64,000 bases of DNA from Rhodosorus marinus CCMP1338 (lineage: Eukaryota; Plantae; Rhodophyta), in assembly GCA_029953675.1 (NCBI GenBank), contig JAMWBK010000001.1, forward strand, positions 1,302,001 through 1,366,000, read 5' to 3'. Under the pieces are notes generated by a model. That model did no database searches. It was not told where the DNA came from and worked only from the letters and a program-made list of their open reading frames with translations. Positions 7,351-61,564 of this stretch are shown piece by piece (the first letter of the stretch is position 1; the number at the start of each line of letters is the position of its first letter). A program made the translations under genes and the position numbers.

Positions 7351-7537
7351 GGGAAGTCAATTATGAAGACTTGAACGGGAGTTGATATTTTGTTTTAGAG
7401 CATGTCTTCTTCGGTTACAGGTTATCTCCTAGTGACAATTTGCGACAAACCCTTGTATAGACATGATATGAATGGGTCCGAAGATTAACGAAATGGTGAG
7501 ACCCAACATTTCAGAGGCAATTCCGAGATGGACTGTC

Positions 7538-7545: not shown

Positions 7546-7668
7546 CTTGTCCGGAGGCACGGTTCCCCTTTCGGCATGACTTTCGCTGTGGATGAACGTA
7601 CCTAGGTCTAGGCCAAAAGGCGCTTGAAGCATTGAGGAAAGGACGGGTTGCGGAAGACCAAAAGAAAA

Positions 7669-8643
7669 ATGATGGGCGGAAAAGTGATCTTTCTTCTACT
7701 CCTGGTGGTCATCACTATCGGTGTGGCACAAGACACATGTGCTTCATTTCAACTTCCTGTACCCACAACGGTTAGACCAAACGGCGACCCATCCACTTCT
7801 ACCAAGCGGGCCTTTTGGGGCGATAAATACTGCCGGAAGTTGACGGTGCCGGAGCTGGATGGAAGCGTGCCGGTAGTCTGTGTGAACACTAAGATGATCG
7901 ACGAAGACACGACCTGCCTAAAGATGAGGCTGCGAAACGTTAACCGGTCCCTGGTGAAGTCCCTCAAGATTGGCGTGCACCCAGATTGCAGTATGGTTCC
8001 TCCTGTTGGTGGGAACCCGAGGAGGTTCCAGAGCCAGAGACTTGGAAAGAATTTAGGCGCTGGTCAAGTCATAAAGTCAGTGAAGCTCTGTTTCGACAAA
8101 GTCCCAGCGACACAACCGTGCTGTCGGACAACTCGGTGTTTGGTGATGGAAGCAACTATTGAGGTCGATGGAGTGGACACGACAGTAGAAATCGATGACC
8201 CTAGATGTGGCGAGGAACCGACGTGTCCATACTACATCGGCTGTCCAAACGTGATCGACGAAGAGTCAGACACGAGAAGGGGTGTTAAATACTTTTATGG
8301 CACAGTTTCCGACGATGTAATACTTCTACCTGATGTCCCGAACACGGCGACCTATACCTACGACGGTAGAGACGTAGTACTTGGCGGCAACGGAAACGAT
8401 GTTGTGTTCGCCGGAGAAGGAGAGAATATTATGAAAGGGGGCTTGGGCGACGACCAGTTTTTTGCCAATGAGGACGGAGTAAACAGAGTTTACCTCGGTG
8501 GCGGCATTGATGCATTTGGCCCCTTCCTTGACGGTGGTGCAACTCCAGACTACTATTATGGAGGCCAGGGGAATGACTATTACTTCTCTTACAATCTGGA
8601 TTACAACGATGTTGTCCAAAGTTTTGATGGCCCCATCTCGTAA
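7669..8643 (+). CDS. Secreted Cys-rich protein with C-terminal RTX-like (GGxGxD) Ca-binding repeats, paralogue 1 (324 aa)
   Basis: Signal-peptide-like MMGGKVIFLLLLVVITIGVAQ; 12-Cys domain; GGNGND, GGLGDD, GGQGND repeats; intronless; two intact paralogues. Confidence 0.85.
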   Translation: MMGGKVIFLLLLVVITIGVAQDTCASFQLPVPTTVRPNGDPSTSTKRAFWGDKYCRKLTVPELDGSVPVVCVNTKMIDEDTTCLKMRLRNVNRSLVKSLKIGVHPDCSMVPPVGGNPRRFQSQRLGKNLGAGQVIKSVKLCFDKVPATQPCCRTTRCLVMEATIEVDGVDTTVEIDDPRCGEEPTCPYYIGCPNVIDEESDTRRGVKYFYGTVSDDVILLPDVPNTATYTYDGRDVVLGGNGNDVVFAGEGENIMKGGLGDDQFFANEDGVNRVYLGGGIDAFGPFLDGGATPDYYYGGQGNDYYFSYNLDYNDVVQSFDGPIS

Positions 8644-8659
8644 CCCCAGACTAACGTAA
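8642..8659 (-). mobile_element. 18-nt tail-only insertion matching the family C 3' end
   Basis: Reverse complement TTACGTTAGTCTGGGGTT is identical to 60612-60629. Flanked by 11-bp TSD CCCCATCTCGT (8631-8641, 8660-8670). Absent from paralogues 2 and 3. Confidence 0.8.
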
Positions 8660-9439
8660 CCCCATCTCGTCGTAGATGGGTAGGAGGAGGTTATTGTTCT
8701 CAGAGGTTTAGTGTAAACCACGGAATGTGTCCCTTACGAAAACTAAAACAAGGGGAGAAGGTAGAGGACCTCCCTCAATGAGATATCAGAAAAGCCCCTA
8801 ATCGCAAAAAGTTTTTGAGCAGACGATTCAGGTGCTATCGCATTGACCGCCAGCTAACCATTACAGCTCCAGAGAATCCTATTGATTCCTTTGCCGCTGC
8901 GGACCTCAAAGCGTCTTTTCTGCGTGCCTTCGGCGGCTTCCACCTGTTCCCCGCCGTCCACACGCTGCTTAAAGCATAGAAGAGAACACTCGACAATTTT
9001 GAGGGAGCCACAAAGCAAAGCAAAAAGGCAGAAACTGATATGGCAGATTGTGGGCGCCCCAGATAAACGCTTACATCCGTGATTGTCGGGATGACACCCC
9101 AGACTTAAGTAAAAACGCCTCCCTTTGTGTCGACGAAATCTGTTGGAACGGTCTCGCGGTCAGCGGTGACCGAACGCTCTCAGCATGTAGAAGGATGATT
9201 CGCACATCGTCATGCATACGGTAGGACCGATGTGAGAACGGTATACGGTAGAAAAACCTTATAGGGGTTCAAACGTTTGAAATAGTTTGAACGGTACAAG
9301 GCATCGACTATCACCACAATATAGTAGGTTACTTAAGTGCGAGATATCGACCCCAAGGGTCAGGGAAACAATAAAGAAACCATCGAAGTTTGGCTGACGG
9401 GACTTTGGTCAAGGTTGGGAATCCTCGAAAATTCCAACA

Positions 9440-19690: not shown

Positions 19691-20539
19691 CAAGAACCCA
19701 AGACTAAGGTGGTTAAAAAGCGTTGCAAGCCGGCGGAAGTCAAGCCTCGGTTGGCATGCCGTGACTATACAGTCTGGGCTCAGGTCACTACTAATCAGTA
19801 TTGGGTGTATTTTTGACCAGAGAACGAGGTTTTGGGGGTAAGACTGATTGAAACGGTCTTAATTCATTCGCGTGATCGAGATATTTGAGTGCTTACACGA
19901 GCGCACATTGTGTGCCTGTAGGAGTGCGGAAGGAAAGCAATACCCGGGAGGAGGCTTGTATCCTGTTAAGGTGTTTGGGATCGTGGAGTACAAAACGATA
20001 GCAAGAAGGCCTGGCTGTTCCCTCTCAGATTTGGTTTTTCAAGTTCTGACCTTGGCATGGTCGGTGCCCCTGAGCGCCTTGATAGGCACAGGGGAGAACC
20101 AAATCTCTAAGGACAGCAGTTGAACGTTTTCCGTTCCAAAGGTGTCCCTGGAACCCGGTTGATGGGAAAGTCGAACCAAAGCTATTCACTCTCGCCCCTG
20201 TCTCTGGTGCTCATCGGGGAACTGGAAATCCAGTGCTCCCTTCTCATTTGAAGATTACCTTGTACAGCTTTCTTAAGAGTCTAGTCCATCAGATCAATAT
20301 TCTGACAGGGGATGTAACCTTTCGGGGTACAGTATGGCTAGAGAACAGCCATCTTACCCCTCTGAAGAATTCCCATTAGCATCCTGTCTTCATTGTACTA
20401 AAGAGGATCGATTCTAGTCAAATGGGAGCATATTTATACTCCGGTGCTAGATCATGTTCAACCCTTATCTAGATTAAAATCGTTGAGATTTTAGCCCTCC
20501 TCGAACTAAAAATGTGAAAGAATACGACTTATCTGCCCT

Positions 20540-21000
20540 AGATCAACCCCAGAGTTGTCATGCCTTTGGTAGTACATTCGATGTAACAGTTCACCTTGTC
20601 GATGGTGCTCCTCCGGTGACCAACGGTCACACTTCTGGCCGTTTTAACAATTGTGCTACAATTAACGTGCTCCCACGGACGGCGTCTCACGGACACTCCC
20701 GGGTCTGAGTTAAAACAACTCAACTCACAGTCCTTTGTCAGCCCCCGCTGACATTCTCGCTTGACGACTCGGCCGTTATCGGTCTCTATCATCGACACCG
20801 CCGCTGCCATCAAAACTGGTGACTGCGTTCGTTTTGTGGAACACCCTGCTGACCGTACCACGCGCAGTTGTTGCTGTTGCCAGCCGTTCAGTCTTCTCCT
20901 CTCTTGATTTAACAGGTATGCAAACGCCAGTGGCCACCAACCTAGGGCTTCCTTCCTTAGGTAGGTCATCAGTACGAGGATTCATCAATATTTAGCTGAA
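20540..21000 (-). pseudogene. Possible highly decayed gypsy gag/protease remnant (also ~31960-32400)
   Basis: TYLRKEALGWW resembles gypsy Gag YL.G.A..WW. Downstream similarity is weak. Confidence 0.35.
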
Positions 21001-21673: not shown

Positions 21674-22651
21674 ATGATGGGCGGAAAAGTGATCTTTCTT
21701 CTGCTCCTGGTGGTCATCAGTATTGGCGTTGCACAAGACACATGTGCTTCATTCGAACTTCCTGAACCCACAGCGGTTAGACCAAACGGCGAGCCAACGA
21801 CTTCTACCAAGCGGGCCATTTGGGGCGATAAATACTGCCGGAAGTTGACGCTGCCGGAGCTGGATGGAAACGTGCCGGTCGTGTGTGTAAACACTAAGAT
21901 GATCGATGAAGATACTACCTGCCTAAAGATGAGGCTGCGAAACGTTGGATTGTCCTTTGTGAAGTCCCTCAAGATTGGCGTGCATCCAGATTGCGCCATG
22001 GTTCCTCCTGCCGATGGGAACCCGAGGAGGTTCCAAAGGCAGAGACTTGGAAACAATTTAGCGAACGGACAAGTCATAAGCTCAGTGAAGCTCTGTTTCG
22101 ACAAAATCCCAGCGACACAATCGTGCTGTGGGACAACTCGGTGTTTGGTGATGGAAGCAACTATTGATGTCGATGGAGTGGACACGACAGTAGAAATCGA
22201 TGACCCTAGATGTGGCGAGGAACCGACGTGTCCATACTACATCGGCTGTCCAAACGTGATCGACCAAGAGTCAGACACGAGACGGGGTGTTAAATACTTT
22301 TATGGCACAGATTCCGACGATGTACTACTTCTACCTGATGTCCCGTACACGCGGAGCTTTTCCTACGACGGTAGAGACGTAGTTCTTGGCGGCAACGGAA
22401 ACGATGTTGTGTTCGTCGGGGGAGGAGAGAATACTATGAAAGGGGGCTTGGGCAACGACCAGTTTTTTGCCGATGAGGACGGAGTAAACAGAGTTTACCT
22501 CGGTGGCGGCACTGATGCATTTGGCCCCTTCCTTGACGGTGGTGCAACTCCAGACTACTATTATGGAGGCCAGGGGAATGACGTTTACTTCTCTTACAAT
22601 CTGGATTACAACGATGTTGTCCAAAGTTTTGATGGCCCGATCTCGTCGTAG
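21674..22651 (+). CDS. Secreted Cys-rich + RTX-repeat protein, paralogue 2 (325 aa)
   Basis: Intact ORF; same 12 Cys and GGxGxD repeats as paralogue 1. Confidence 0.85.
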   Translation: MMGGKVIFLLLLVVISIGVAQDTCASFELPEPTAVRPNGEPTTSTKRAIWGDKYCRKLTLPELDGNVPVVCVNTKMIDEDTTCLKMRLRNVGLSFVKSLKIGVHPDCAMVPPADGNPRRFQRQRLGNNLANGQVISSVKLCFDKIPATQSCCGTTRCLVMEATIDVDGVDTTVEIDDPRCGEEPTCPYYIGCPNVIDQESDTRRGVKYFYGTDSDDVLLLPDVPYTRSFSYDGRDVVLGGNGNDVVFVGGGENTMKGGLGNDQFFADEDGVNRVYLGGGTDAFGPFLDGGATPDYYYGGQGNDVYFSYNLDYNDVVQSFDGPISS

Positions 22652-23059
22652 ATGGGTAGGAGGAGGTTATTGTTCTCAGAGGTTTAGTATAAACCACGGA
22701 ATGTGTCCCTTACGAAAACTAAAACAAGGGGAGAAGGTAGAGGACCCCCCTCAATGAGATATCAGAAAAGCCCCTGATCGCAAATTTCTTTTGAGCGGGC
22801 GATTCAGGTGCTATCGCATTCACTGCCAGCTGCCCATTACAGCTCCAGAGAATCCTATTGATTCCTTTGCCGCTGCCGACCCCAAAGCGTCATTTTCCCG
22901 GATGACAACGATGTTGTCAAAAAATTTGTTAACAAGTAAAGCCACAAACACCTGGTTTTGTCCACACAAAGGGAGGCTTTTTTACTTCCTCGACCCACGC
23001 TATGACAGCCTGTCTAGCTCAGTAGAAGTAATAATGATTCATTGATACATTGTAAGTGC

Positions 23060-23676: not shown

Positions 23677-24620
23677 GTAACCGTAAACTTTACTGCGCAG
23701 CTGCCTACTGCAGCGTATCACTAGTTCTACTACTATCTAGCGAAAAGCTTACGCTAATCCCGCTACCGGGGTCTCATGCTGCGTTCACACGAAAAAACAG
23801 GGACGAGTGGATTCGCCAACTGGTCCACTCCCAGAGCGCCCATAGCTATCTCCGCGTTCCTCGGCCATAATTTGCGGTTGATCTGAGCCCGAACATCGCT
23901 CAGTTCTAAGCTCCGGTGCAACAAATGCTTGCATCTATCTCGTAGAAATTCTTGGGCCATTTGTCCTGTACGCCCAAAGCTCTCGATCGCAATGGGAATG
24001 AGCTTGTCGTCTGGCTTCTCCACTGACATCGCCTCTTTGTAATGTGCCATTTCCACCTCTTCGCTCGTTTCGCTGCATATCCATTCTCTGACCCACTCCG
24101 ATTCACGTTTTTCTCCTGCACTGGCGATGTGACAGTCACATCCAGCGCATACCTTTGGAACGTCCTGGGATGAGTGGCAATGATATCCGGTCTTAGTCGG
24201 TAGTTCTCGAAGTACCCCTCCGGTTCTTGCTTAACGTCGATGAAATTCCCGTGATTCAGCGTCAGCTCCGTCAGATTTCGTCGTACCTTCGCTGCCATAG
24301 TCCCGTCGATGTTGGGCAATGGTTTCACCATTGTACGCCGTTAGTACCATGCGTACTACCACAACTAGTACACTTCCCCGACGTCCGTATGTCCAGTATC
24401 GGCAAACCCAACAGCTGTCGTACATTCACTTGCAGTTCTGCTGTACTCTGTTTTTTCGGCGCGAGCGTCGGCATTTCCCGTAACCACACTCCTGATCCGG
24501 CTCCGGCTGCGGACCGAATTCTGGCCCGATCTTCAGCCGAAATTTGCCCGTGGGATCCCAGTCTTTGGAAAGCTGCATGGTGTGCCTCTCTCGAGAGGGT
24601 TTGTTGAATGCCCTATTTGT
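23677..24620 (-). mobile_element. Family C RLE non-LTR retrotransposon, 5'-truncated and decayed
   Basis: RARIRSAAG..WL..P, LGLP..CTSC..HC..RRxDEI, LRPDI...YALDVTV, IPIAIESFG. Paralogue at 59046-60629. R and D are contiguous at ~37945 (empty site). Confidence 0.85.
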
Positions 24621-26255: not shown

Positions 26256-28600
26256 ACAGGGCTTTACTGGGCTTTAATAGCATAGCCTGAAGCGCTACGC
26301 AAACCGTGAAAAGGAACTAAGAACTAGGGAGGGAAGCGGGAAGCGTGCAAACCCAGGCGCCAATGGCGCGCCTCGGCAAGCATGCTGCTAGAATATCGCC
26401 TCAGAGAGACACCTAAACGCCGCAAAAGTTCCAAGTATTCAACAGGATGCTCAGTAAAACATTTCCGCAACCATTTCAAACCCGACTTCTCCACGTGACC
26501 AAAGCTTTCCACAATGAAAGGCTGGAACCGGTGGGAGCGGCCCTTAACACGAGGCAGACTGGCCATGCTCTCAGCATACCGTCGTTCCTTCACTCGTCGA
26601 AGAGCCGAAGCGGCTGCCCCTCGGCGGTGGGCGGCAGCCGTGAGATGGGCGCTCGCCACAGGGCATGTAATCGCGAGGTCAACATATGCTGAGCGTCGTG
26701 CAGCAGGGTCTGATACAAGAAGATCTGCGATACAGTGGGCCGGCGCCGTGTCCGAGACCGATCTGGGTAGTCCCGATTCTACCTCAACCGTATGCCCTAC
26801 CCGAGTTAAACATTCGCTTAGGATGTACTTGAGACGAGTGTGGCGCCTCGTGCGGAGACCTCGCAACAGGCCGCATGAACCCAAGAAGTGGTAGCCACAA
26901 GCGTCAACCCGGCTATCACATCCCTGACAGAAAGACGGCCGATTAGAGTGCCACGGGGCTTGTGGCAAACCTAAGTAGATCCGTGCGGCGGAGCGGAAGT
27001 GGAAGGCATCGAGACGGTGACCCGGCGACGAAGGCAGAGTGGTAACCACAGGTGCGAGAGATGGCCTCCCATGCCGCGAAGGCGAGCGGCGGTGGTAGGC
27101 GGTGTGAGTGGACAGTTGAGCAAGATTGCGTGAGCGGCACTGTGAGCTTTACTAGCATAGCCTGAAGTGCTACGCATGGCGTGAAAAGGAACTAAGAACT
27201 AGGGAGAGAAGCGTGCAAACTCAGGCGCCGATGGCGCGCCTCGGCAAGCATGCTGCTAGAATATCGCCACAGGGCGGCACTAAAACGCCGTAAAAGCGCC
27301 AAGTACTCAGTAGGATGCTCAGCGAAACATTTCCGCATCCACGCTAAACCTGACTTATCCACGTGACCAAAGCTTTCCACAATGAAAGGCTGGAACCGAT
27401 GGGAGCGACCCTCGGCGTAGGGCAGACTGGCCATGCTCCCAGCATACCGTCGTTCCTTCACTCGTCGAAGAGCCGAAGCGGCTGCCTCTCGGCGGCGAAG
27501 CTTATACTGGACTTTACTGGCTTTATTATCATAGCCTACAGCGCTACGCAAACCGTTAAAAGGAACTAAGAACTAGGTAGGGAAGCGTGCAAACCCAGGC
27601 GCCGATGGCGCGCCTCGGCAAGCATGCTGCTCGAATATCGCCACAGAGAGGCACTTAAGCGCCGCAAAAGTTCCAAGTATTCAACAGGATTCTTTCCGCA
27701 ACCACTCCAAACCCGACTTCTCCACGCGACCAAAGTTTTCCACAATGAAAGGCTGGAACCGGTGGGAGCGACCCTGAGCGCGAGGAAGGCTGGCCATACT
27801 CTCAACATACCGTCGTTCCTTCACGCGGCGAAGGGCCGAAGCAGCTGCTCCCCGGCGACGGGCGGCAGCCGTCAGATGGGCGCTTGCCAGAGGGCATGTA
27901 ATCGCGAGGTCAACTTATGCTGAGCGTCTGGCGCCGGCATCGGAGACGAGGAGATCTGCGATACAGCGGAGCGGTGCCCTATCCGAGACCCATCTGGGTA
28001 GTTCCGATTCCACCTCAACCGTATGCCCTACCCGAGTCAGACATTCGCTGAGAATGTACTTGAAGCGAGTGTGACGCCTCGTACGAAGACCTCTCAACAG
28101 TCCGCATGAACCTAAGAAATGGTAACCGCAAGCATCGATCCGACTCTCACATCCCTGACAGAAAGACGGCCGATTAGAGTGCCACTAGCATAGCCTGAGG
28201 CGCTACGCAAGGCGTGAAAAAGAACTAAGAACTAGGGCGGGAAGCGTGCAAACCCAGGCGCCGATGGCGCGCCTCGGCAAGCATGCTGCTAGAATATCGC
28301 CGCAGGGCGACATTCAAACGCCGTAAAAGCGCCAAGTACTCAGTAGGATGCTCAGCGAAACATTTCCGCAACCAGTCAAGCCAGTTCAGGCTATGCTAGT
28401 AAAGTCCTTCTCTGAAGATCACGCGCTTCTAAACCCGACTTATCCACATGACCAAAGCTTTCCACAATGAAAGGCTGGAACGGGTGGGAACGACCCGCGG
28501 CGTAGGGCAGGCTGGCCATGCTCTCAGCATACCGTCGTTCCTTCACTCGTCGAAGAGCCGAAGCTTATTCTGGCTTTATTAGCCTACAGCTTTATTAGCA
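26256..28600 (-). mobile_element. Head-to-tail stack of at least 4 5'-truncated family A copies plus tail fragments
   Basis: Tails at ~26260, ~27143, ~27505, ~28184 and ~28570. Copies differ in length and sequence. Confidence 0.88.
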
Positions 28601-31132: not shown

Positions 31133-31952
31133 GGACTTTACCGGACTTTACTGGACTTTACTAGCACTAGCATAGCCTGAAGCGCTACGCAAGGCGTGAA
31201 GATGAACTAATAACTAGGGAGGGAAGCATGCAACCCCAGGCGCCGATGGCGCGCCTCGGAAAGCATGTGGAATTTACTAGCATAGCCTGAAGCGCTACGC
31301 AAGGCGTGAAGATGAACTAATAACTAGGGAGGGAAGCATGCAACCCCAGGCGCCGATGGCGCGCCTCGGAAAGCATGTGGAATTTACTAGCATAGCCTGA
31401 AGCGCTACGCAAGGCGTGAAGATGAACTAATAACTAGGGAGGGAAGCATGCAACCCCAGGCGCCGATGGCGCGCCTCGGAAAGCATGTCGCCGGAATATC
31501 GCCAAAGGGAGACACTTAAACGCCTCAAGAGCGCCAAATATTCAGTAGGATGCTCAGCAAAACATTTCCGCAACCACTCTAAACCCGACTTATCGACGTG
31601 ACCAAAGCTTTTCACAATGAATGGCTGGAACCGGTGAGAGCGACCCTCAGCGCAAGGCAGACTGGCCATGCTCTCAGCATACCGTCGTTCCTTAACTCTT
31701 CGAAGGGCTGAAGCCGCGGCCCCCCGGCGGCGGGCGGCTGCGGTGAGGTGGGCGCTGGCCACGGGGCAGGTAATCGCAAGGTCCACATATGTTGAGCGTC
31801 TGGCAGCAGCGTCAGAGACGAGGAGATCGGCTATACAGCGGGGCGGTGCAGAGTCCGAGATGGATCTGGGCAGTTCCGACTCAACCTCAACCGTATGCCC
31901 TATCCGAGTCAAAAATTCGCTGAGGATGTACTTGAGGCGAGTGTGACTTTTT
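31133..31952 (-). mobile_element. Family A 5'-truncated copy with its last 110 bp present three times
   Basis: Period 110 (catagcctga at 31171, 31281, 31391). Tail (ggacttta[c])n at 31133-31160. Candidate TSD CTTTAGT (31126-31132, 31953-31959). Confidence 0.9.
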
Positions 31953-33870: not shown

Positions 33871-34845
33871 ATGCGCGGAAAAGTGGTATTTCTTCTACTC
33901 CTGGTGGTCATCGGTATTGGCGTGGCACAGGACACATGTGCTTCGTTTGAACTTCCCGAACCCACAACGGTTAGACCAAATGGCGAGCCAACCACTTCGA
34001 ACAAGAGGGCCATTTGGGGCGATAAGTACTGCCGGAAGTTAACGCTGCGGGAACTGGATGGAATGGTTCCGGTAGTCTGTGTGAACACTAAGATGATCGA
34101 TGAAGACACGACCTGTCTGAAGATGAGGCTGCGAAACGTTGATTTGTCCCTGGTGAAGTCCCTCAAAATTGGCGTCCATCCGAATTGCAATATGGTTCCT
34201 CCTGCCGGTGGGAACCCGAGGAGGTTCCAGAGCCAGAGACTTGGAAAGAATTTAGCGGAAGGACAAGTCATAAAATCAGTTAAGCTCTGCTTCGACAGAA
34301 TCCCGGCGACACAATCGTGCTGTGGGACATCTCGGTGTTTGGTGATGGAAGCAACTATTGACGTCAATGGAGTGGACACGACAGTAGAAATCGATGACCG
34401 TAGATGTGGTGAGGAACCGGCGTGTCGATACTACATCGGCTGTCCGAACGTGATCGACCAAGAGTCAGACACGAGAAGGGGTGTTAAATACTTTTATGGC
34501 ACAGATTCCGATGATTTAATACTTCTACCTGATTACCGAATCACGTCGAGCTTTACCTACGACGGTAGAGATGTTATACTTGGCGGCAACGGAAACGATC
34601 GTGTGTTCGTCGGAGGAGGAGAGAATATTATGAACGGGGGCTTAGGCAACGACCAGTTTGACGCCTATAAGGACGGGGTGAACAGAGTTTACCTCGGTGA
34701 CGGCTTTGATGGGGTTAGACCGTACCTTGACGGTGGTGCCACTCCAGACTACTATTATGGAGGCCCAGGGTATGACGTTTACTTCTCTTACAATCCGGAT
34801 GATAACGATGTTGTCCAAAGCTTTGATGGCCTCGGCTATACGTAG
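33871..34845 (+). CDS. Secreted Cys-rich + RTX-repeat protein, paralogue 3 (324 aa)
   Basis: Intact ORF; 12 Cys conserved; most diverged in the RTX region. Confidence 0.85.
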   Translation: MRGKVVFLLLLVVIGIGVAQDTCASFELPEPTTVRPNGEPTTSNKRAIWGDKYCRKLTLRELDGMVPVVCVNTKMIDEDTTCLKMRLRNVDLSLVKSLKIGVHPNCNMVPPAGGNPRRFQSQRLGKNLAEGQVIKSVKLCFDRIPATQSCCGTSRCLVMEATIDVNGVDTTVEIDDRRCGEEPACRYYIGCPNVIDQESDTRRGVKYFYGTDSDDLILLPDYRITSSFTYDGRDVILGGNGNDRVFVGGGENIMNGGLGNDQFDAYKDGVNRVYLGDGFDGVRPYLDGGATPDYYYGGPGYDVYFSYNPDDNDVVQSFDGLGYT

Positions 34846-37754: not shown

Positions 37755-38410
37755 GATTATGACTGATCTGCAACGCATCAAATGCTCCCCTGAAGCTCTA
37801 CGTAAACACCTACTGTATGCCGAAGGGATCGGCCCAGGTTCGGTTCTACGACTCCCATAGGTCAACAAAGAAACTCGCAACCAATCAGGACCCTTATATT
37901 TAGTGTACTTACATGGGAGTTCTGTCCAAGTCGGATTTGGTGACGAATGAGGTTACTAACACAGAGCCATTGTAGTCGCCCAGCAGGGATTCGTATTTTG
38001 TTGGCTAACTGAGTGAATAGGATCAAACCTTCGTAGGATTAGGGTTTTTGCGCGCTTGCATCTCCATGAAGATTTTCCCTAAGTCCAAGCATCTCGGAGA
38101 TAAGCACGGCATATATACTGATCCTAGAAGCCATCAAGTATGGTTGGTTCGGAATAAATATGAACGTCGAGGATGAACAACACTCATACACCTAGTTTTG
38201 TTAACAAAATTCCTCCCTGCGTCCTCCTTGGCCAAGGTCTCCTCTAACCTTCTCTACAATCCGGTTCATTCCTCATCTTCCTAGTTCACACCTCTCCGAG
38301 GCGGTGAGCTGGGTTAGCTTTCCGGTGACCGGAAAGCTCTTACAGAGCCGTAGAGACCCGAGGAGGAGCATGCACAGTTACCTTTTAGTCGAGCAACCCC
38401 TATGATTAGT
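37755..38410. repeat. Uninterrupted R-D dispersed repeat (empty site for the family C insertion at 23677-24620)
   Basis: ...ggatttggtgacgaatgaggttactaacacagagcc joins the two halves separated at 23-24 kb. Confidence 0.75.
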
Positions 38411-41160: not shown

Positions 41161-42204
41161 ACTAGTTCAGTCCGCCTGATTGATTACTTAACCACTCCTC
41201 TCGACACCGCAAAACGCTCTCCAAAGACCAACACCATTCCTCCGTGAAACGCTCGCCGTTGATCTTAAATCACTACCACCCCATCGCTCTTAGAGCAATC
41301 ATTCTAACTGTGAGTCTCCCCTGGCCCCGATCCAATGCATCAAAATCCTTTGTTTTCGGGTAGTCTGCCCCCGACCAAAGGCTATTCAGGAGAGCATGTT
41401 GTGCCACGCCAGTCTTTCCTGGCCCCATATTCAAGCGCTCAAAAATCTTCTCTTTCGGAGTCAATATTCTGGCCAAATGGAGTGGCTAATGTTCCCAACG
41501 AACACGTTCCTCCCCCCGGCTCAAACATATGTTCGCATCAAAACAATATCTCCTTGGCCAAAGGGAGTCATGGTCATGGTCATGGGTCACAAACGAGGAT
41601 TGGACTCATGAGTCTTTGGCCCGCCAAAAACGGCCTTGTTCGGTTCAGACAATTTCCGGGCCAAGAGTGAAGTCATCAGTGCTTCCCGTCCGCAGGGTTA
41701 AAAAATCTCAAAACCTTGGCTTCGAGGGTAAATATTCTGGTCAAAGAAAGTCCGGGCTAATGTTCTGCTGAGGAATATCGCCCTTGGAGATGTGGTTGCT
41801 GAATTAGAGTATTAGCGACTGCGCGGAGCCTCCTCCGCGCAGTAAGTTACGGGGGGGAGTGGAGGGGCGAGTTGGAGAGGTGTGGACGGGGGGAAACGAG
41901 TGAGGATAGCGGTGGAGTTTGCGGACTATATTTTTTGGTTTCTTTCCGCAGGCTTTCCGAAAGTTCTTTAGAAGAGATCTTATTAGTCGGTATTGAACCC
42001 GCTAGCCTGTCTCGCGCAAGCGGTTGGGTTTCTTGGGGGACATATTGGCTGTTATGGCATGGCCGTGAGGTTGGATGGTTGGCTGTTTAGGAGTCGAGAA
42101 GGATTGGAGCTGTGAGGAGTCAGATTAGGAAGAGAACCGTCGTGCCCACGGTTGGGTTCGCGGGTTCTGGGGGTATCGCAAGCAAGGAAGAGGGAAAAAC
42201 CCGT

Positions 42205-45200
42205 ATGGACGCCCACGTGTTTGCAGTAGTGCTGGTTGCGCTTGTTTTGCAGCGGACGGGGGTCGGTGCAACGCTTACGAAGGTTGACTTCGAAGATGCT
42301 CCTGTCGTGGGTAGTATTGATGGTCTTCCGACCGACTTCGCTTTTCTGCCTCCTGGTCAGACTGACCGCATTCTGGTGACAGGTTATAGGGGAACGGTCC
42401 AAGTTGTCGTGAGAGGAGCGGTGCAGGAGAAACTATTCCTGGACGAAAGGGTTTCCCAGGCGGAGCTGGACAGTTGGACGGGCTACCCCAGATTGTGGGA
42501 TCGAGGCCTGGCGCCAGAGTATCGATCGGTTGCTGTAGATTCCGACTTTCAAAATCATCCGTATGTGTACCTCGCGTACTTTCACTACATTGAAAGAGTG
42601 CGAAGAACTCCTCCCCAAGGGTTTGTGGTTCGGTACAGGGTGAGCAATGACCTCTCAGAGGCGATCCGTAGCTCGAAGAGATTCATTCTCGGAGGATACG
42701 TGAGTGGAAATTGTACGCAAATTAGCACAACGGAGGATACCATTTGCATTACTGCTCCTGATCATACGATGGCGGGGTTACTCGCGGACCCCCAGGGAAG
42801 AGTTTGGATATCAGTAGGGGATTCCGCCTTTTGGGACGATTTTGACCGACCGAACGCCATGAGGGCTCAGGACGTTGACACTCTATACGGGAAGGTCCTC
42901 AGGGTAAATCGGTCTGGGAAAGGCCTACCATCTAACCCCTACTACGACGGCAGTCCGGATTCAAACCGATCAAAGGTGATGGTTTTGGGTCTGCGCAACC
43001 CATGGAACATTCATTGGGATGCTGAGCTTGATACTCCATGGGTCAGTGATGTTGGAGAAGCAACCCTGGAAGAGTTCAATCTAGTTCAACCGGGTGCGAA
43101 CTACGGGTGGCCATGCATGGAGGCAGAGCTTGATCGCTTTCAGTTTGGCATCTTCAACGAGTGCGTAGATTTGTTCAATAATGTTCCCCCATCATCCGGA
43201 GCCTCATATGTGGGTGCGAAAGTGGGTCCGAAACTAAGCTACTCCCACGAGGAGGGTACTGCGATTACTGCCGCGTTGAGGGTGAACATCGAGGGTTGGC
43301 CTGACGCTTTCAACAATGGCGTTTACTACAGTGACTATTCCGGAAACTGGATACGGTACGTCAAGGTAGACGACGTCGGTAACGTTGTTTCGGCTCCTCT
43401 CGAGTTTGCCACAGGGGTCCCTGGACCGATCAACCTTCGACCGGGGAGCGACGGATGTCTGTACTACCTAGCTCTCGCTTCCAGTCAGATAGGTCGGATC
43501 TGTTACAGGGAGAACAATTCGCCGCCAGAGGTGGTTGGGATCGTACCGCCGGATGGGTTCACGGGCGCGGCTAGGTCGACCTTGGTTGAGGTGGCTGTAA
43601 GCAAGAAGGTGACAGCGGAATCGGCACAAGCGTCTATAGTTGTGGTAGAGACTGTATCGGAGGTTGTTGTTGCTGGGCATGTGGAACAGGATGAGGTCAG
43701 GAACATTCTTACCTTTGTTCCAAACGAGGCGCTGAAGGAGGATGCGGAATACACGGTGACTGTTTCCGCGTTGATCGACTTGAAAAACCTCTCCATGATA
43801 GGCGAGGTGACGAGTACATTTTTTACGGGCAGAGGGTTCGTGCAGTATGTTTCCGATCTGGCCCTAGCTGTGGATCCTACACCCGAAGCGGTTTACCGTG
43901 ACACAGCGATTAATGGCGTGACTCCCATATTCATTCGCGGCAGGCGATTCAGGAAGGGCTTGAGCTTCGTCCCCGTCGTGCGAGTAGGTGTTCAAGTCCC
44001 TTCTGGATGTACGTCGATCGAAGGTTTCTACGGGATGGACGACACTGCTAGGTGGATTGTAGCGGGCGCAGTCATCTTTACGATCGCCGTGGACGGCAGT
44101 ATTGTGTACGACTCAGCTGCGGATGGACTCGGATTTCCCAGCAGAAAAGTCGATCCCGCGACCTTCTTCAGCATGGATGTAGAGAGTGGGAGTACCTTGA
44201 CTCTGGGAGGCGACTTTGGAGGGAGACACGAGAATCAAGAGGACAATCGCGGAGCGTGGGCGGATGTCAGGTTCCGCTGCGGCAACATAGACTCTAGGGC
44301 ACCAAAAATCGAGTCGATCGACCCAGGCGACGGCTCAACTACATCGATCGATGTGGTGATTCGCATCGTATTCGACGAGGTCATGAACTATAACACGGTC
44401 CTTCAGGCAGTGAGCATTGCGTCGGTGGATGGGCGTCGCATCCCGTGGCTTCCAGTTGAGAGTACCGAGCCCCGACTATTTGCGCTCGAGTTGGAGAGCT
44501 TGGAGTTCGATACGACGTACGTGGTCAGCGTATCGAAAACGGCGATTGACGTTTCTGGAAACCGATTGGAGGAAGACGTGCAGTGGTCGTTTGCCACTGA
44601 GTTTCCGCCAGCAACTGGAGAGAAGCTCCAATTCCTGGGAGATTTGACACCCAAGCGCTCGAGAGGTGGTGTCTCGTTCAACGGATTTCCGAGGAGGCTT
44701 AGCCCAGGAGTGCAAATATACGAGAACGGTCTTGGTATGCAGGCAAACGCCATGGTCAGCTACGACCTGGGTGGTCTCGCTTGTACTCGGCTCAAAGGGC
44801 TCACGGGTAAGGATGCAGCTGCACGAGGCGATTCTGGTGCTTGCCGGCTGCGGGTTTTCAGCGGGGCTAATCGGGAAGCATCGCGGATGCGTGTTGATCG
44901 GTACCCTCGCGCAGCTCAACGGTCGCGGGGCCTAAGTGTTGGACTAGGAGGGGATAGCTACCTCGAGATTAAGCTTTCCGCGGGGGGGGATGGCGGCCAG
45001 GCTAAGGACCTTTGCGACATCGCCCGAGCTAGGGTGGAGTGTGATGGTGTTGATATCTACCTGACGGAACTTACGCCGTTATCTGAGCGGGGGGTGGTTG
45101 AACGGAACAGGAGTGCGGTGCAGTTGCCGCTGCAGCTGCTCAGGTCCTCAATGACCTTCGAGACTGGAATTGTTATCCCCGCCGGGGCTGAAGTGACGTA

Positions 45201-45990
45201 TGCAATTCCTGGACGGTGCTCAACGATCAGCTTCACAGTGGGAGCGGGCAATGGAGCGGACTTTGGAGACACCGAGTTGGTGACCACTGTGGATGGGGAG
45301 GCGGTTTGTATGGATCAGAACTTTTCCCATCGCGACGGAGCGAGGACGTTCTTGTGTAACGTGGAAGGAGGGGAGGAGCTGAAACTTGCGGCCATCCGAG
45401 GAGATACTAGTGGTGCAATCATTGTCGGGGAGGCAGAGTTGGACTGTGCTGTCGGAACTCGGAAACCTGTGTGTGAGATGACCTCAATTCCCAGCAACTT
45501 TCGGGTTGGGGACACAATCGAGTATGCGGGGCAAGGCTACCGTTTCAACGGAGCAGAGCTACCAGGGAGCGCACTGAGCTGGGATATCACGCTTGTCCAT
45601 TGTGAACCGGAATGTCACGACCATCCGGAGGTCAGAGTAGAGGGCAGGAAGGGTGGGAGCTACGATGTTCCCGATCACGGCGACTACTTCTTTATCAAGA
45701 TCGACTGCACAGTAACGGACATGGGTGAGGTGTCTAAGAAATCGACGAGTGTGCTTCCGGAGACGGCTTTAATTACGGTGGAATCCGTGCCGACTGGGAA
45801 GCTCGCCACCGCCGACGGCACGAACGGCGAGACGCCCCTGTTGAAAACGGTGGTCGTGGGCTCAACGTTCACCGTGGATGTGGACCCAGTGGCTTTCGGC
45901 ATATGGTCACACGACAACACTCTCGGTCCAACTTTTGACTATCTTCTTGAGAGTGACACCCCGTTAGTCTTCACTGCTAGCTACAACTAA
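42205..45990 (+). CDS. Secreted glucose/sorbosone (PQQ-type) dehydrogenase-like protein with Big_5 Ig-like, NPCBM-like and PKD-like modules (~1261 aa)
   Basis: Signal-like MDAHVFAVVLVALVLQRTGVGA. GSDH motifs LWISVGD-like, GKVLRVN..G.G.PSNPYY, GLRNPW, DVG...EE.N, NYGWP. Two SbsA/Big_5-like blocks, three NPCBM-like blocks, LSWDITLVHC...CHDHP...VPDH C-terminal module. Domain names come from motif recognition, not a search. Confidence 0.85.
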   Translation: MDAHVFAVVLVALVLQRTGVGATLTKVDFEDAPVVGSIDGLPTDFAFLPPGQTDRILVTGYRGTVQVVVRGAVQEKLFLDERVSQAELDSWTGYPRLWDRGLAPEYRSVAVDSDFQNHPYVYLAYFHYIERVRRTPPQGFVVRYRVSNDLSEAIRSSKRFILGGYVSGNCTQISTTEDTICITAPDHTMAGLLADPQGRVWISVGDSAFWDDFDRPNAMRAQDVDTLYGKVLRVNRSGKGLPSNPYYDGSPDSNRSKVMVLGLRNPWNIHWDAELDTPWVSDVGEATLEEFNLVQPGANYGWPCMEAELDRFQFGIFNECVDLFNNVPPSSGASYVGAKVGPKLSYSHEEGTAITAALRVNIEGWPDAFNNGVYYSDYSGNWIRYVKVDDVGNVVSAPLEFATGVPGPINLRPGSDGCLYYLALASSQIGRICYRENNSPPEVVGIVPPDGFTGAARSTLVEVAVSKKVTAESAQASIVVVETVSEVVVAGHVEQDEVRNILTFVPNEALKEDAEYTVTVSALIDLKNLSMIGEVTSTFFTGRGFVQYVSDLALAVDPTPEAVYRDTAINGVTPIFIRGRRFRKGLSFVPVVRVGVQVPSGCTSIEGFYGMDDTARWIVAGAVIFTIAVDGSIVYDSAADGLGFPSRKVDPATFFSMDVESGSTLTLGGDFGGRHENQEDNRGAWADVRFRCGNIDSRAPKIESIDPGDGSTTSIDVVIRIVFDEVMNYNTVLQAVSIASVDGRRIPWLPVESTEPRLFALELESLEFDTTYVVSVSKTAIDVSGNRLEEDVQWSFATEFPPATGEKLQFLGDLTPKRSRGGVSFNGFPRRLSPGVQIYENGLGMQANAMVSYDLGGLACTRLKGLTGKDAAARGDSGACRLRVFSGANREASRMRVDRYPRAAQRSRGLSVGLGGDSYLEIKLSAGGDGGQAKDLCDIARARVECDGVDIYLTELTPLSERGVVERNRSAVQLPLQLLRSSMTFETGIVIPAGAEVTYAIPGRCSTISFTVGAGNGADFGDTELVTTVDGEAVCMDQNFSHRDGARTFLCNVEGGEELKLAAIRGDTSGAIIVGEAELDCAVGTRKPVCEMTSIPSNFRVGDTIEYAGQGYRFNGAELPGSALSWDITLVHCEPECHDHPEVRVEGRKGGSYDVPDHGDYFFIKIDCTVTDMGEVSKKSTSVLPETALITVESVPTGKLATADGTNGETPLLKTVVVGSTFTVDVDPVAFGIWSHDNTLGPTFDYLLESDTPLVFTASYN

Positions 45991-46655
45991 AGCCGACGGT
46001 TCAGAATTTTTTCCCAGATGTGCGATAAAAGTTGCGCTGGCGGGGCTCAGCTGAATGCCCACGTGAACCCAGCTACTATCAAAAAAGGCTTCTATGATTC
46101 TGGAAAGGCAAATCCATAGGCTGATTGCTAACGATGAATCCAATCAACAGAGTGATAGGAGTTACTGTACTCAGACATTGGGTGCTGGCAGCGAGCTAAC
46201 CGTGTACCACCAGTACTAACGGCATGGAGATGGCTGTCAGAATAGAGGATTGTAGTTTGTAAATACCAAATGGGAAACATCGTCCAGGCCGCCTGGGTCA
46301 GATCATATGTTTGCACGCATGTTCCAGAGTGAACGTTTCCGAAGTCCGAAGACCGCGGAGCAAAATTTTCATATAAAGACCAATATTTGACGTGAGCATA
46401 CCCAAAGTGGACGGAGAATGAGAACATCCACTTCGGGTATGCTCAGTAAAGTCCATGTGTTCGTTTACGGGAAGCGCTTCCCTGGTACGCCTTCCCCTCG
46501 ATTTTCCGCGGGGCGTCGTTTGCATTTGCAAGTACTTCTGTCTTCCGGGTGGGTGTGTTGCGGGGCCTTTCCTATTTGGGTTGGGTTTGGTCGATTATTC
46601 TCTCGGTGCGGTTTCATATTGGTGGTGCAACGTTTACTTTGCGCATTCCCTCAGG

Positions 46656-58490: not shown

Positions 58491-59045
58491 GGTATCTACT
58501 AACTACTTATGCTACTGCCTACTACCGCCAGTACCCGCTTAGGTCTGATCACGAATGACCTCACCTACCAACACCTGAGAACTGATATTCTATGCTCTGT
58601 CTGTAGCAAGAGGTGCAAAATCGAAACGACTCCAAACAGCATGAAGACTTGTCAGTTGCTGATACAGTTGCCATCCCGTCACATGGCCCTGAAACGTGTT
58701 GACGGAGGTAATCAACGTGAAACCCTAGAAAAGGAACAAGGCGTGTTGAATCAAGACACATATGTGTAGACTCTGAGGTGACTTAGAAGAGTCGGAGGAA
58801 ACCAAGCACGGTACCTATATAAGCCAAACTCACCGGCATACTAGTGAGGGATACTCCAAGACAAGAAACAAGAGACACAACAAGCGTCAACTCTGAGGTG
58901 ACTTCGGAGAGTTGGAGGAAACCAAGTGATACCCATATGAGCCAAACTCAACGCATCCTAGTCAGGGATACTCCGAGACAAGCAATAAGAGATGTAACAA
59001 GTAAGGACACAAATACCTGATTTTGTTAACAGGTTATCTGGGGTT

Positions 59046-60629
59046 AGGGTACAACGGTTTCATCACTGCCCAACATCAACTGGACTGTGGCAACGTCGGC
59101 ATGACGAAATCTGCAGAGAGCTGGCACGGTGGCTAAGGCGATGGAACTTCATGGACGTAGAGCAAGAACCTGAGGGGTACTTCGAGAACTACGGACTGCG
59201 ACCTGATATCGTTGCTAGGCATCCGAGGACCAAACAAAGGTATGCGCTGGATGTGACGGTGGTGTCACCATTACAGGGAAAATATTTGCGGCGGAGCCAA
59301 GATGATAGCGGATACGCGGCGAGAGCTGCGGAGAAGTGGAAAATCGCTCACTACAAAGAAGCGATGGTGATCGAGAAACCGGATGATAAGTTCATCCCGA
59401 TAGCGATAGAGACGTTTGGGCGTACGGGGCAAATGGCACAAGAGTTCCTCCGCGACAGCTGCAAACACCTACTGCACAGGAGTGAGGAGCTGAGAGACGT
59501 GAGATCCCAGATAAAACGGCAACTATGGCGAGGTAACGCAGAGATAGCATTAGGCGCTTTGCGCGTGGACCAGCTGGATTACTGGCATAGCCTGAAGCGC
59601 TACGCAAGGCGTGAAGATGAACAAATAACTAGGGAGGGAAGTATGCAACCCCAGGCGCCGATGGCGCGCCTCGGAAAGCATGTCGCTGGAATATCGCCAA
59701 AGGGAGACACTTAAACGCCTCAAGAGCGCCAAATATTCAGTAGGATGCTCAGCAAAACATTTCCGCAACCACTCTAAACCCGACTTATCGACGTGACCAA
59801 AGCTTTCCACAATGAATGGCTGGAACCGGTGAGAGCGACCCTCAGTGCAAGGCAGACTGGCCATGCTCTCAGCATACCGTCGTTCCTTAACTCTTCGAAG
59901 GGCTGAAGCCGCGGCCCCCCGGCGGCGGGCGGCTGCGGTGAGGTGGGCGCTGGCCACGGGGCAGGTAATCGCAAGGTCCACATATGTTGAGCGTCTGGCA
60001 GCAGCGTCAGAGACGAGGAGATCGGCTATACAACGGGGCGGTGCAGAGTCCGAGATTGATCTGGGCAGTTCCGACTCAACCTCAACCGTATGCCCTATTC
60101 GAGTCAAAAATTCGCTGAGGATGTACTTGAGGCGAGTGTGACGCCTCGTACGGAGACCTCGCAACAGTCCGCAGGAACCCAGGAAGTGGTAGCCACAAGC
60201 GTCAATCCGGCTCTCACATCCCTGACAGAAAGACGGCCGATTAGAGTGCCACGGAGCCTGTGGCAAACCGAGATAGATCCGTGCGGCAGAACGGAACTGG
60301 AAAGCATCGAGACGATGACTCAATGACGACGGTAGAGTGGTTAACCACAAGTGCGAGAGGTGGCCTCCCATGCCGCGGAGACGAGCGGCAGTGGTAGGCG
60401 GCGTGAGAGGAGAATTGAGCATGACTGTGTGAGCGGCACTGTGTTGGCCCCAGGTGAGGCTATGTTGACCAGCTGGAGAATCCGCTGGTGCCTGTTTTTT
60501 CTTTTGAACGTAGCATGAGACCCCGGTAGCGGGGTTCCAATAAGTTTCTCCCTAGATAGGATTAGACGTAGTGTTGCGCTGCAGTAGGCAGCTGCCCAGT
60601 AAAGCTTACGGTTACGTTAGTCTGGGGTT
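59046..60629 (+). mobile_element. Family C 5'-truncated copy (interrupted by family A)
   Basis: HCPTSTGLWQRRHDEI...LRPDIV...YALDVTV...LRVDQL|ENPLVPVF..SMRPR. Ends ttacggttacgttagtctggggtt. Confidence 0.88.
59579..60466 (-). mobile_element. Family A 5'-truncated copy
   Basis: 11-bp TSD GACCAGCTGGA (59568-59578, 60467-60477). Confidence 0.93.
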
Positions 60630-61564
60630 CCTAGTGAGGGATACTCCCAAACAAGCAATAAGAGATGTAACAAGTAAGGACACAGATACCTGATTTTGTT
60701 GACAGCTTATGGGCACAGCCTGGGTTTAAAAAAAAAAAAAGTCGCAAGAAGAATGGATTCGGTTGGATATTTTCTTAGATGTCCACCCAAAGTTGACAGG
60801 ACCGGATGACTATAACAATTGGAGAGCCAGCGTCACCAATGGATTCAAGCTGGGAGGTGTACATGAAGCCGTGTTGGGGCAGGAGGATAATGTGGACGAA
60901 CGAGTTCGAGCGGTGTCGCTGCTCAAATTGAACCTGGGAATTGAAGCTATGCTGATCGCAGAACAGCCCATAGACGCAAAAGAACCCATGGAAAAATTGG
61001 AAAAGAAACACGTCACGAAAACGATAGCGACCTTTGTGAATGTGAAACATGAACGGCAACCAAATTTCAACGAGGTACCATGAAAGGAACACTGGCCCAC
61101 GCCAGCCAACTTGGAGAAACAATCCACACGGACGTTTCGGACACTAAATATATCGAAAGGAGCAGAATATTGGCTCACCTTTACCGACGAGGTATCGAGA
61201 TTCACCACAATCTACGGAACAGAAGAAGAGCGACGTATCCCAGGTATTCGACGTATGCATGGCATATTTCGAACGCATAACTGGCCAAAAGGCAACCACC
61301 GCCAACTCAGCACAGGAGCAGAATACCTGGCTTTAATACCTACGGATGAAAGAAAATTCAAGAAGCTTGACATCACCCTGGACACAAGGTCTAGACACGA
61401 CGTCTTGAATTTTAACTACGTATGGTGTATTGGGTCTGGTTCTTGTAGAAATGTACAGTAGAGCCCCGACAAGTTCACGGTAAGGAAACTCCTCTTACCT
61501 TCAGGATTTTTCTGTCGGTATATAGTCCTTTGTCGTCTGCGTTGGCACAGGTTTGCTCTAGCTT

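Follow-up and report, generated by a model that had tools for sequence, protein, structure and literature searches.

A LINE-tail-like micro-insertion supplies the stop codon of an RTX-repeat gene in the red alga Rhodosorus marinus

Long interspersed nuclear elements (LINEs) such as L1 and R2 can leave extremely 5'-truncated insertions behind when target-primed reverse transcription (TPRT) ends early. Here, we describe a very small insertion that closely resembles such products in a 64,000-nucleotide stretch (the window) of nuclear DNA from the unicellular red alga Rhodosorus marinus CCMP1338 (assembly GCA_029953675.1, contig JAMWBK010000001.1, positions 1,302,001 to 1,366,000; about 1.30 to 1.37 Mb of a 3.8-Mb contig [PMC10250338]). 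One of three paralogous genes in the window, paralogue 1, carries 29 bases at its 3' end that the other two lack. These bases consist of an 18-nt copy of the 3' terminus of a LINE family, here named family X, plus an 11-bp duplication of the target. As in truncated L1 and R2 insertions, the constant 3' end is the element terminus, the 5' end is variable, the target site is duplicated, the 5' junction shows microhomology, and related sequences retain the empty site. The insertion differs from those of L1 and R2 in that only 18 to 20 nt were copied, which is far below the sizes usually catalogued, and in that a specific 16-nt unit takes the place of a poly(A) tail, which is why so short a patch can be recognized at all. 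We consider the 29 bases to be probably an abortive, tail-only TPRT insertion of family X, a LINE of the R2/CRE type.

Two further groups of elements offer useful comparisons. MoTeR and FoTeR are CRE-type LINEs of fungi that are flanked by telomere repeats (PMC12857005), and the eel LINE UnaL2 has a 3' stem-loop followed by terminal (UGUAA)n repeats, on which the template slips in a telomerase-like manner (PMC1636434). In R. marinus, the RepeatMasker table of the genome paper assigns 9.26% of the genome to LINEs, and 9.04% is classed as CRE/SLACS (PMC10250338). The window itself is a transposon-rich island with several non-LTR (non-long terminal repeat) families that include reverse transcriptase open reading frames (ORFs), many 5'-truncated copies, and nested insertions.

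Paralogue 1 occupies 7669-8643 on the plus strand (324 aa according to the ORF list and translation; ORF 7648-8643), and its coding sequence ends at 8629-8643 with GGC CCC ATC TCG TAA. Paralogue 2 (21674-22651) ends with GGCCCGATCTCGTCGTAG at 22634-22651 and has a single copy of the empty target site, CCCGATCTCGT, at 22636-22646. Aligning these two with paralogue 3 (33871-34845, plus strand), which also lacks the insert, placed the 29 extra bases of paralogue 1 opposite a clean 29-column gap in both other genes. A blind self-BLAST scan of the window for insertions between repeat copies returned the same event, with 29 extra bases and an 11-bp overlap, and just one further small insertion across the entire window. 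The insert proper, AACCCCAGACTAACGTAA, lies at 8642-8659 and is bordered by two copies of the 11-mer CCCCATCTCGT, the left at 8631-8641 and the right at 8660-8670, which are identical at 11/11 positions. The original prediction, made from the letters of the window, had proposed an 18-nt insert with an 11-bp target-site duplication here, and the sequence, the three-way alignment, and the insertion scan all bear out this description.

Read on the minus strand, the insert is TTACGTTAGTCTGGGGTT, the 3' terminus of family X. The 18-mer has exactly two matches in the window, at 8642-8659 (plus strand) and 60612-60629 (minus strand), whereas shuffled sequence gave 0.03 matches even when three mismatches were tolerated. 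The predicted reverse complementarity to 60612-60629 was found to be exact over 18/18 positions and to extend to 20/20 (60610-60629), reaching 8660-8661 in paralogue 1. Because the exact match spans 20 nt, the boundary between insert and duplication is ambiguous by 2 nt, giving an insert of 18 to 20 nt and a duplication of 9 to 11 bp, with a 2-nt microhomology (CC/GG) at one insert junction. On the minus strand, the patch as a whole is TGGGGTTACGTTAGTCTGGGGTTACG, which amounts to about 1.4 copies of a 16-nt repeat. When JGI metagenome contigs were scanned, the 18-mer had no match.

The consequences for the gene can be read directly from the sequence. The insertion took place two codons upstream of the old stop, and the stop now in use, TAA at 8641-8643 (plus strand), combines a T from the target with AA from the insert. 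The protein is shorter by its final serine only, and the ancestral last codon and stop, TCG TAG, have been displaced to 8670-8675 (plus strand), where they now belong to the 3' untranslated region (UTR). The creation of the TAA and the downstream shift of TCG TAG are thus as originally described. The gene call of the public assembly (P0001, 324 aa) is 100% identical to paralogue 1 and likewise stops at the new TAA.

The three paralogues encode products of 324 to 325 aa with a signal peptide, a Cys-rich N-terminal part, and RTX-type calcium-binding repeats. In the host protein, the nonapeptide GGxGxD calcium-binding repeats exceed the Pfam cutoff (PF00353, HemolysinCabind, residues 230 to 263; 30 bits against a cutoff of 23), and 2248 library proteins match it at an E value of ≤0.001, mostly via the RTX repeat region. 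An exhaustive profile search also retrieved full-length homologues of 320 to 330 aa at 31 to 42% identity, from which we conclude that the host gene belongs to a real gene family. Nothing points to a toxin function for this RTX-type protein. All paralogue ORFs are intact, with pairwise ratios of nonsynonymous to synonymous divergence (dN/dS) of 0.31 to 0.55. The synonymous divergence (dS) between paralogues 1 and 2 is 0.12, compared with 0.25 and 0.29 for the distances to paralogue 3, which makes paralogue 3 the outgroup. Since both paralogues 2 and 3 lack the insert, the insertion is derived in paralogue 1, and the empty state is the older one, in line with the proposed polarity. The C-terminal residues of the homologues vary (PIS, PISS, LGYT, ETS, EKPN, and PSDE), and since this end of the protein is not conserved, the loss of the final serine is probably neutral. 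That the function of the host gene is almost intact after the insertion, as had been suggested, is plausible. We also noted that paralogues 1 and 2 share 94% identity over the 220 nt 3' of the old stop (8676-8895 versus 22652-22871), a higher conservation than that of the synonymous sites in the coding sequence (dS, 0.12). This suggests either a constrained 3' UTR or gene conversion.

Family X, the non-LTR retrotransposon family that holds the partner 18-mer, is represented in the window by two copies besides the patch. Copy 2 (59049-60629, plus strand) is 5' truncated, encodes a C-terminal endonuclease domain, and is interrupted by a fragment of another LINE, family A. Once this nested element is removed, the plus strand of 59049-60530 translates into a continuous C-terminal protein domain with a stop near 60530, followed by a 3' UTR of about 100 nt that extends to 60629. 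As the translation gives the coding strand, the stop, and then the 3' UTR, the partner 18-mer (60612-60629, plus strand) constitutes the terminal 18 nt of this 5'-truncated copy, with unrelated LTR-like sequence beyond it. The coding strand also led us to reject the alternative that the 18-mer is a 5' flank or a duplication belonging to X. Copy 1 (23677-24610, minus strand) lies inside another repeat (whose empty site is near 37951), ends with ...TTTACGGTTAC, lacks the last 14 nt of the terminus, and has no clear duplication. In self-comparison, 60464-60615 matches 23677-23828 in reverse and 59049-59577 matches 23816-24336.

The same terminus recurs outside the window. An independent X copy in the transcript contigs L002/L003 ends with ...AATAAAGCTTACCGTTACGTTAGTCTGGGGTT, which contains the exact 18-mer and abuts unrelated sequence, namely, another X copy at its 5'-truncated start. 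In L008, a stretch of another chromosome contig (JAMWBK010000007.1), an X 3' UTR fragment of about 90 nt ends with ...AGTTACGTTAGTCTGGGGT followed by G at 8723-8740, a match of 17/18. Counting paralogue 1, the X terminus thus occurs at four independent junctions with different DNA after each: CCTAGTG after window position 60629, ATGCTCAG after L002 position 2219, GTCGGG after L008 position 8740, and ACGAGATGGGG in paralogue 1. The suggestion that the 18-mer is a genuine family 3' end and not an incidental match holds for X copy 2, the L002/L003 copy (exact), and the L008 copy (17/18). A protein search with the X domain returned matches from R. marinus only, in MMETSP transcripts and JGI transcript contigs, and their presence there indicates that family X is transcribed.

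Pfam and PDB sequence searches with the X C-terminal domain were uninformative and gave no identification, and its class was approached through structure and neighboring domains. The AlphaFold model of the domain has a mean predicted local distance difference test score (pLDDT) of 80.5. In a fold search with this model, the top seven PDB matches were all R2 proteins (E values, 6e-7 to 5e-4; template modeling [TM] scores, 0.44 to 0.65), and PD-(D/E)xK cap-snatching and restriction endonucleases ranked after them. The C termini of X and of families A and B align in a common layout of a Cys/His-rich stretch, RHD, RPD-x14-D, and E.FG. Upstream of the X domain, L002 encodes a reverse transcriptase segment (RVT_1; E value of 3.5e-4, below the Pfam cutoff), and the genomic X homologues P0014 and P0017 carry PF00078. 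The predicted fold of the C-terminal domain points to an R2-like restriction-like endonuclease, and on the basis of the reverse transcriptase segment, this fold, and the motif layout, we assign X to the R2 superfamily, as a probably CRE-like LINE with a restriction-like endonuclease.

This assignment places X with the R2 superfamily and CRE clade (R2, CRE1/2, SLACS, MoTeR, and FoTeR), with which the R. marinus elements have in common the R2-like reverse transcriptase of family A and the predicted R2-like endonuclease fold of X. The motif quoted for MoTeR1/CRE elements resembles the RHD...RPD-x14-D layout found here, and as in MoTeR and FoTeR, tail-like repeats occur on both sides of copies. 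In contrast to R2, CRE, SLACS, and MoTeR, the elements described here are dispersed and not restricted to spliced-leader genes, ribosomal DNA, or telomeres, and the paralogue 1 event left an 11-bp duplication, whereas a small deletion is typical of R2. The flanking repeats also differ from those of MoTeR and FoTeR in being family-specific units, for which a telomeric nature is no more than a possibility. The 3' UTR of X may resemble that of UnaL2 in that a small hairpin is followed by a reiterable terminal unit, as also in the (AGTCCAGTAA)n tails of family A, although the clade here has a restriction-like endonuclease, whereas that of UnaL2 is of the apurinic/apyrimidinic (AP) type, and the unit here is 16 nt long. 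On this comparison, template slippage may also operate in the R. marinus LINEs. The hairpin itself, GCTGC-AGTAG-GCAGC, lies at 60578-60592, about 37 nt from the terminus, and has counterparts at homologous positions of five further X copies; it has a 5-bp stem with two covarying pairs, in a set of six sequences only and with a short stem.

Family A, a related and abundant LINE family, offers a comparison from the same window. A 5'-truncated family A fragment (59579-60465, minus strand), which ends with ...GGCTATGCCAGTAA, is nested in X copy 2 and flanked by a perfect 11-bp duplication, GACCAGCTGGA (59568-59578 and 60466-60476). Its length equals that of the duplication in paralogue 1, 52 kb away. 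The best PDB sequence matches of the family A reverse transcriptase are R2 proteins (E value, 1e-14). At their ends, family A copies also carry short tandem repeats, (AGTCCAGTAA)n and its variants, which makes family-specific tandem tails look like a property of these LINEs. An automated duplication search around family A tails gave one clean case, with tail repeats and nesting obscuring others.

The tail unit of X is the 16-nt GGGGTTACGTTAGTCT. Across the window and the additional loci, all 10 of the 10 tail-like sequences end in GGGGT(T) at the 3' side, whereas their 5' starts lie at variable distances, from 13 to 66 nt for the tails and up to full 3' UTRs, bodies, and whole elements. A fixed 3' end combined with a variable 5' start is the pattern expected of TPRT with 5' truncation. 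X copies occur in several unrelated contexts, and most lie next to preexisting tail units, possibly through a preference for tails. A same-family tail precedes most X bodies and one full-length copy of family A. In L008, an array of X units at 20869-20935 consists of CTGGGGTTACGTTAGT repeated 3.6 times and then TCTGGGGTTA, a 10-nt variant, repeated 2.1 times; a CTGG microhomology connects it with a broken ORF1 of family A.

Taking these observations together, we favor as the probable origin of the 29 bases a TPRT event of family X that stopped within the tail. The restriction-like endonuclease of the element would have nicked the plus strand of the gene after ...CCCCATCTCGT, and the freed 3'-OH would have primed reverse transcription at the extreme 3' end of the X RNA (...GGUUACGUUAGUCUGGGGUU-3'). 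cDNA synthesis would then have aborted at 18 to 20 nt, and the cDNA end (...GTAACC) would have paired with the CC of the target, so that the two were joined by the 2-nt CC/GG microhomology. A second nick on the opposite strand, 11 bp away, followed by fill-in, would account for the duplication. We infer these steps of nicking, priming, abortion, and second nicking from the products.

Several points weigh against this account. The target bases themselves prolong the match to the tandem-unit consensus, by TGGGG on one side and ACG on the other, and this extension fits microhomology priming under more than one model. Some X copies (window copy 1 at 23677, L005, and L007) lack the terminal 14 nt and end differently, so the tail is either a feature of a subfamily or sometimes lost. 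Copy 1 has no clear duplication and the junctions of copy 2 (59049 and 60629) are complex, for which reason 11 bp is not established as typical for X. Two clean junction pairs were available in all, too few to derive a target consensus for the endonuclease. The L008 array of X units is located 3.6 kb from the contig end with its G-rich strand outward, and this position, together with the MoTeR and FoTeR precedent, makes a telomere-like origin of the unit possible. The survey of tails covers about 100 kb of this genome. A search of the genome paper, its supplements, and a telomere survey did not yield a telomere motif for R. marinus.

We therefore weighed other origins for the patch. The 16-nt unit GGGGTTACGTTAGTCT could be the telomerase-templated repeat of the alga or a derivative of it. 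In that case, a minus-strand 3' end in ...GATGGGG at a staggered break would have been extended by about one unit and rejoined, and X, like MoTeR and FoTeR, would simply carry or target the repeat. The outward G-rich array in L008 is in keeping with this, and both flanks, TGGGG at the break end and ACG opposite, fall in register with the unit. Telomere-targeting CRE-type LINEs inserted between telomere repeats are known (PMC12857005), and the telomere motifs of red algae beyond the Cyanidiophyceae are poorly known. Similarly to interstitial telomeric repeats at breaks, the patch is a G-rich piece of unit length that lies within unique sequence and keeps phase with a break end that is itself G rich; in contrast to them, its target is duplicated over 11 bp, and its fixed 3' phase corresponds to a LINE terminus. 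Such a duplication is a retrotransposon-type signature, the same as that of the nearby bona fide LINE insertion, and the 3' phase, constant in 10/10 cases, falls where the X 3' UTR ends. Moreover, the sister family A, whose unit is nontelomeric, shows the same tail arrays and tails before heads, and the L008 array lies inside a family A ORF1 and not at a chromosome end. We regard telomerase extension as unlikely. Somewhat less likely still is that a longer X copy with tails on both sides was inserted by the same TPRT mechanism and then lost its body through recombination or slippage between the tails, in the manner of a solo LTR. Most X bodies do have tail-like sequence before and after them (window 59035-59047; L002 153-172 and 2202-2219; L008 8723-8740, 20869-20935, and 21411-21440), and the end product would be identical to the observed patch. 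This route, however, takes two events where one suffices and offers merely 13 to 20 nt of homology for recombination, and the patch, with its 1.4 units and clean microhomology junctions, includes no remnant of a body.

Templated insertions of about 20 nt are known from the repair of DNA breaks. End joining, for example by polymerase theta, might have copied about 20 nt of X DNA or RNA at a double-strand break without any LINE endonuclease or reverse transcriptase, and each junction does show a short microhomology (CC/GG at one and possibly CGT/ACG at the other). It leaves unexplained, however, why the copy stops exactly at the terminal nucleotide of the element and why an exact 11-bp duplication, matching that of the nearby LINE insertion, is present, and we find it very unlikely. 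Hardly any weight falls on the insert being ancestral and precisely lost twice or being an assembly or polishing artifact. We found nothing in favor of either. The assembly is Nanopore based and was polished with Pilon, but polishing errors do not typically produce a structured insertion of 29 bp with a match to a repeat terminus. Two independent, exact losses of 29 bp, each restoring a single 11-mer, would be unparsimonious, and the perfection of the duplication implies youth. Slippage or tandem duplication is ruled out as the origin of the patch because the empty allele has no CGTAACCCCA seed, and a DNA-transposon excision footprint is ruled out because the insert is a LINE 3' terminus.

We also considered a broader scheme around the abortive TPRT insertion. 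In it, the reverse transcriptases of CRE-type LINEs would deposit family-specific terminal units at nicks by telomerase-like reiterative copying, and the resulting patches would serve as landing pads for later copies. In a stronger variant, the 16-nt unit would be a telomere-type repeat, X a telomere-targeting LINE similar to MoTeR and FoTeR, and the patch an interstitial telomere repeat of one unit. We offer the scheme as speculative and, on balance, doubtful. If such a cycle exists, it would explain the tails before nearly every X body and some A bodies as well as the irregular tail arrays.

Additional tail-like sequences were seen at repeat junctions. Tail-like 10- to 20-mers (GTTATCTGGGGTT, AGTCTGGGGTG, CTTAGTCTTGGGTT, GGTAACGTTAGCCTGGGGTT, and CTTAGTCTGGGGTT) occur in the window at 59035-59047, 9095-9106, and 19695-19708, in L002 at 153-172, and in L005 at 1914-1927, most of them directly before a 5'-truncated LINE body. 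We considered 9095-9112 (three mismatches) as a second micro-insertion, but it is at best a candidate: an unrelated 32-nt repeat, also found at 22956-22987, accounts for half of it (AAGTAA...), and the tail-like part covers only about 10 to 12 nt (ACCCCAGACT). At L008 21411-21446, two tail units run into a perfect palindrome (AGTCTGGGGT followed by AACCCCAGACT) and then into a 5'-truncated X reverse transcriptase ORF, and in this subterminal stretch, all elements have the same orientation.

Within family A, one copy has a 52-bp insertion (28375-28426) that is absent from at least nine other copies. It contains about 26 nt of the family A 3' tail (CAGTTCAGGCTATGCTAGTAAAGTCC) and some 21 nt of further sequence; it lacks a clear duplication and may be a second micro-insertion of the tail type. 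An A tail-like sequence (GGTATGCTCAGTAAAGTCCAT; 46146-46456) precedes the second full-length copy of family A but not the first, near 561. At 31166-31576, a terminal segment of family A, about 110 nt long, occurs three times head to tail, each unit ending with ...GCTAGTAA; the triplet could have arisen either from successive tail insertions of equal length or from tandem duplication.

The surroundings of X copy 2 (58770-59037 and 60629-61100) are themselves repetitive. They hold tandem 115-bp units with TATA-like boxes, an 82-bp segment duplicated on both sides of the copy, and then a degenerate Copia-like gag ORF (LTGPDDYNNWRASV...). X copy 2 appears to have landed in the 5' region of an LTR element. 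We dropped 7413-7437 (ACAGGTTATCT followed by CCTAGTGA) as its candidate empty site, since the support was an 11-nt match with an E value of 2.3. In transcript contig L004 (87-2566), a gene for a hybrid-cluster (Prismane) protein is joined to an X fragment truncated at both the 5' and the 3' end, which represents either an X insertion in the 3' region of that gene or a chimeric assembly. Elsewhere in the window, a 1292-aa ORF (42112-45990) encodes glucose/sorbosone dehydrogenase, NPCBM, and bacterial Ig-like (Big_5) domains; this bacterial-looking architecture within a eukaryotic transposon island may result from horizontal transfer.

The paralogue 1 event is best seen as a LINE footprint that is uncommonly short, follows an ordinary mechanism, and provides a stop codon by chance, and as such it falls within known retrotransposon biology and implies no new mechanism. 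As with other transposon-derived stop codons, a mobile element supplies the stop in use and lengthens the 3' UTR, although here a single residue was lost, whereas truncations or new exons are more usual among transposon-derived changes of gene ends. Retrotransposon footprints of less than 20 nt are overlooked by standard repeat annotation, and they can rewrite a stop codon and a 3' UTR without destroying the gene. In LINEs with specific tails other than poly(A), such patches can be recognized and counted, which would give access to the rate of aborted reverse transcription and to the cut sites of the endonuclease. The practical use lies in genome annotation and in studies of the mutation spectrum in red algae.

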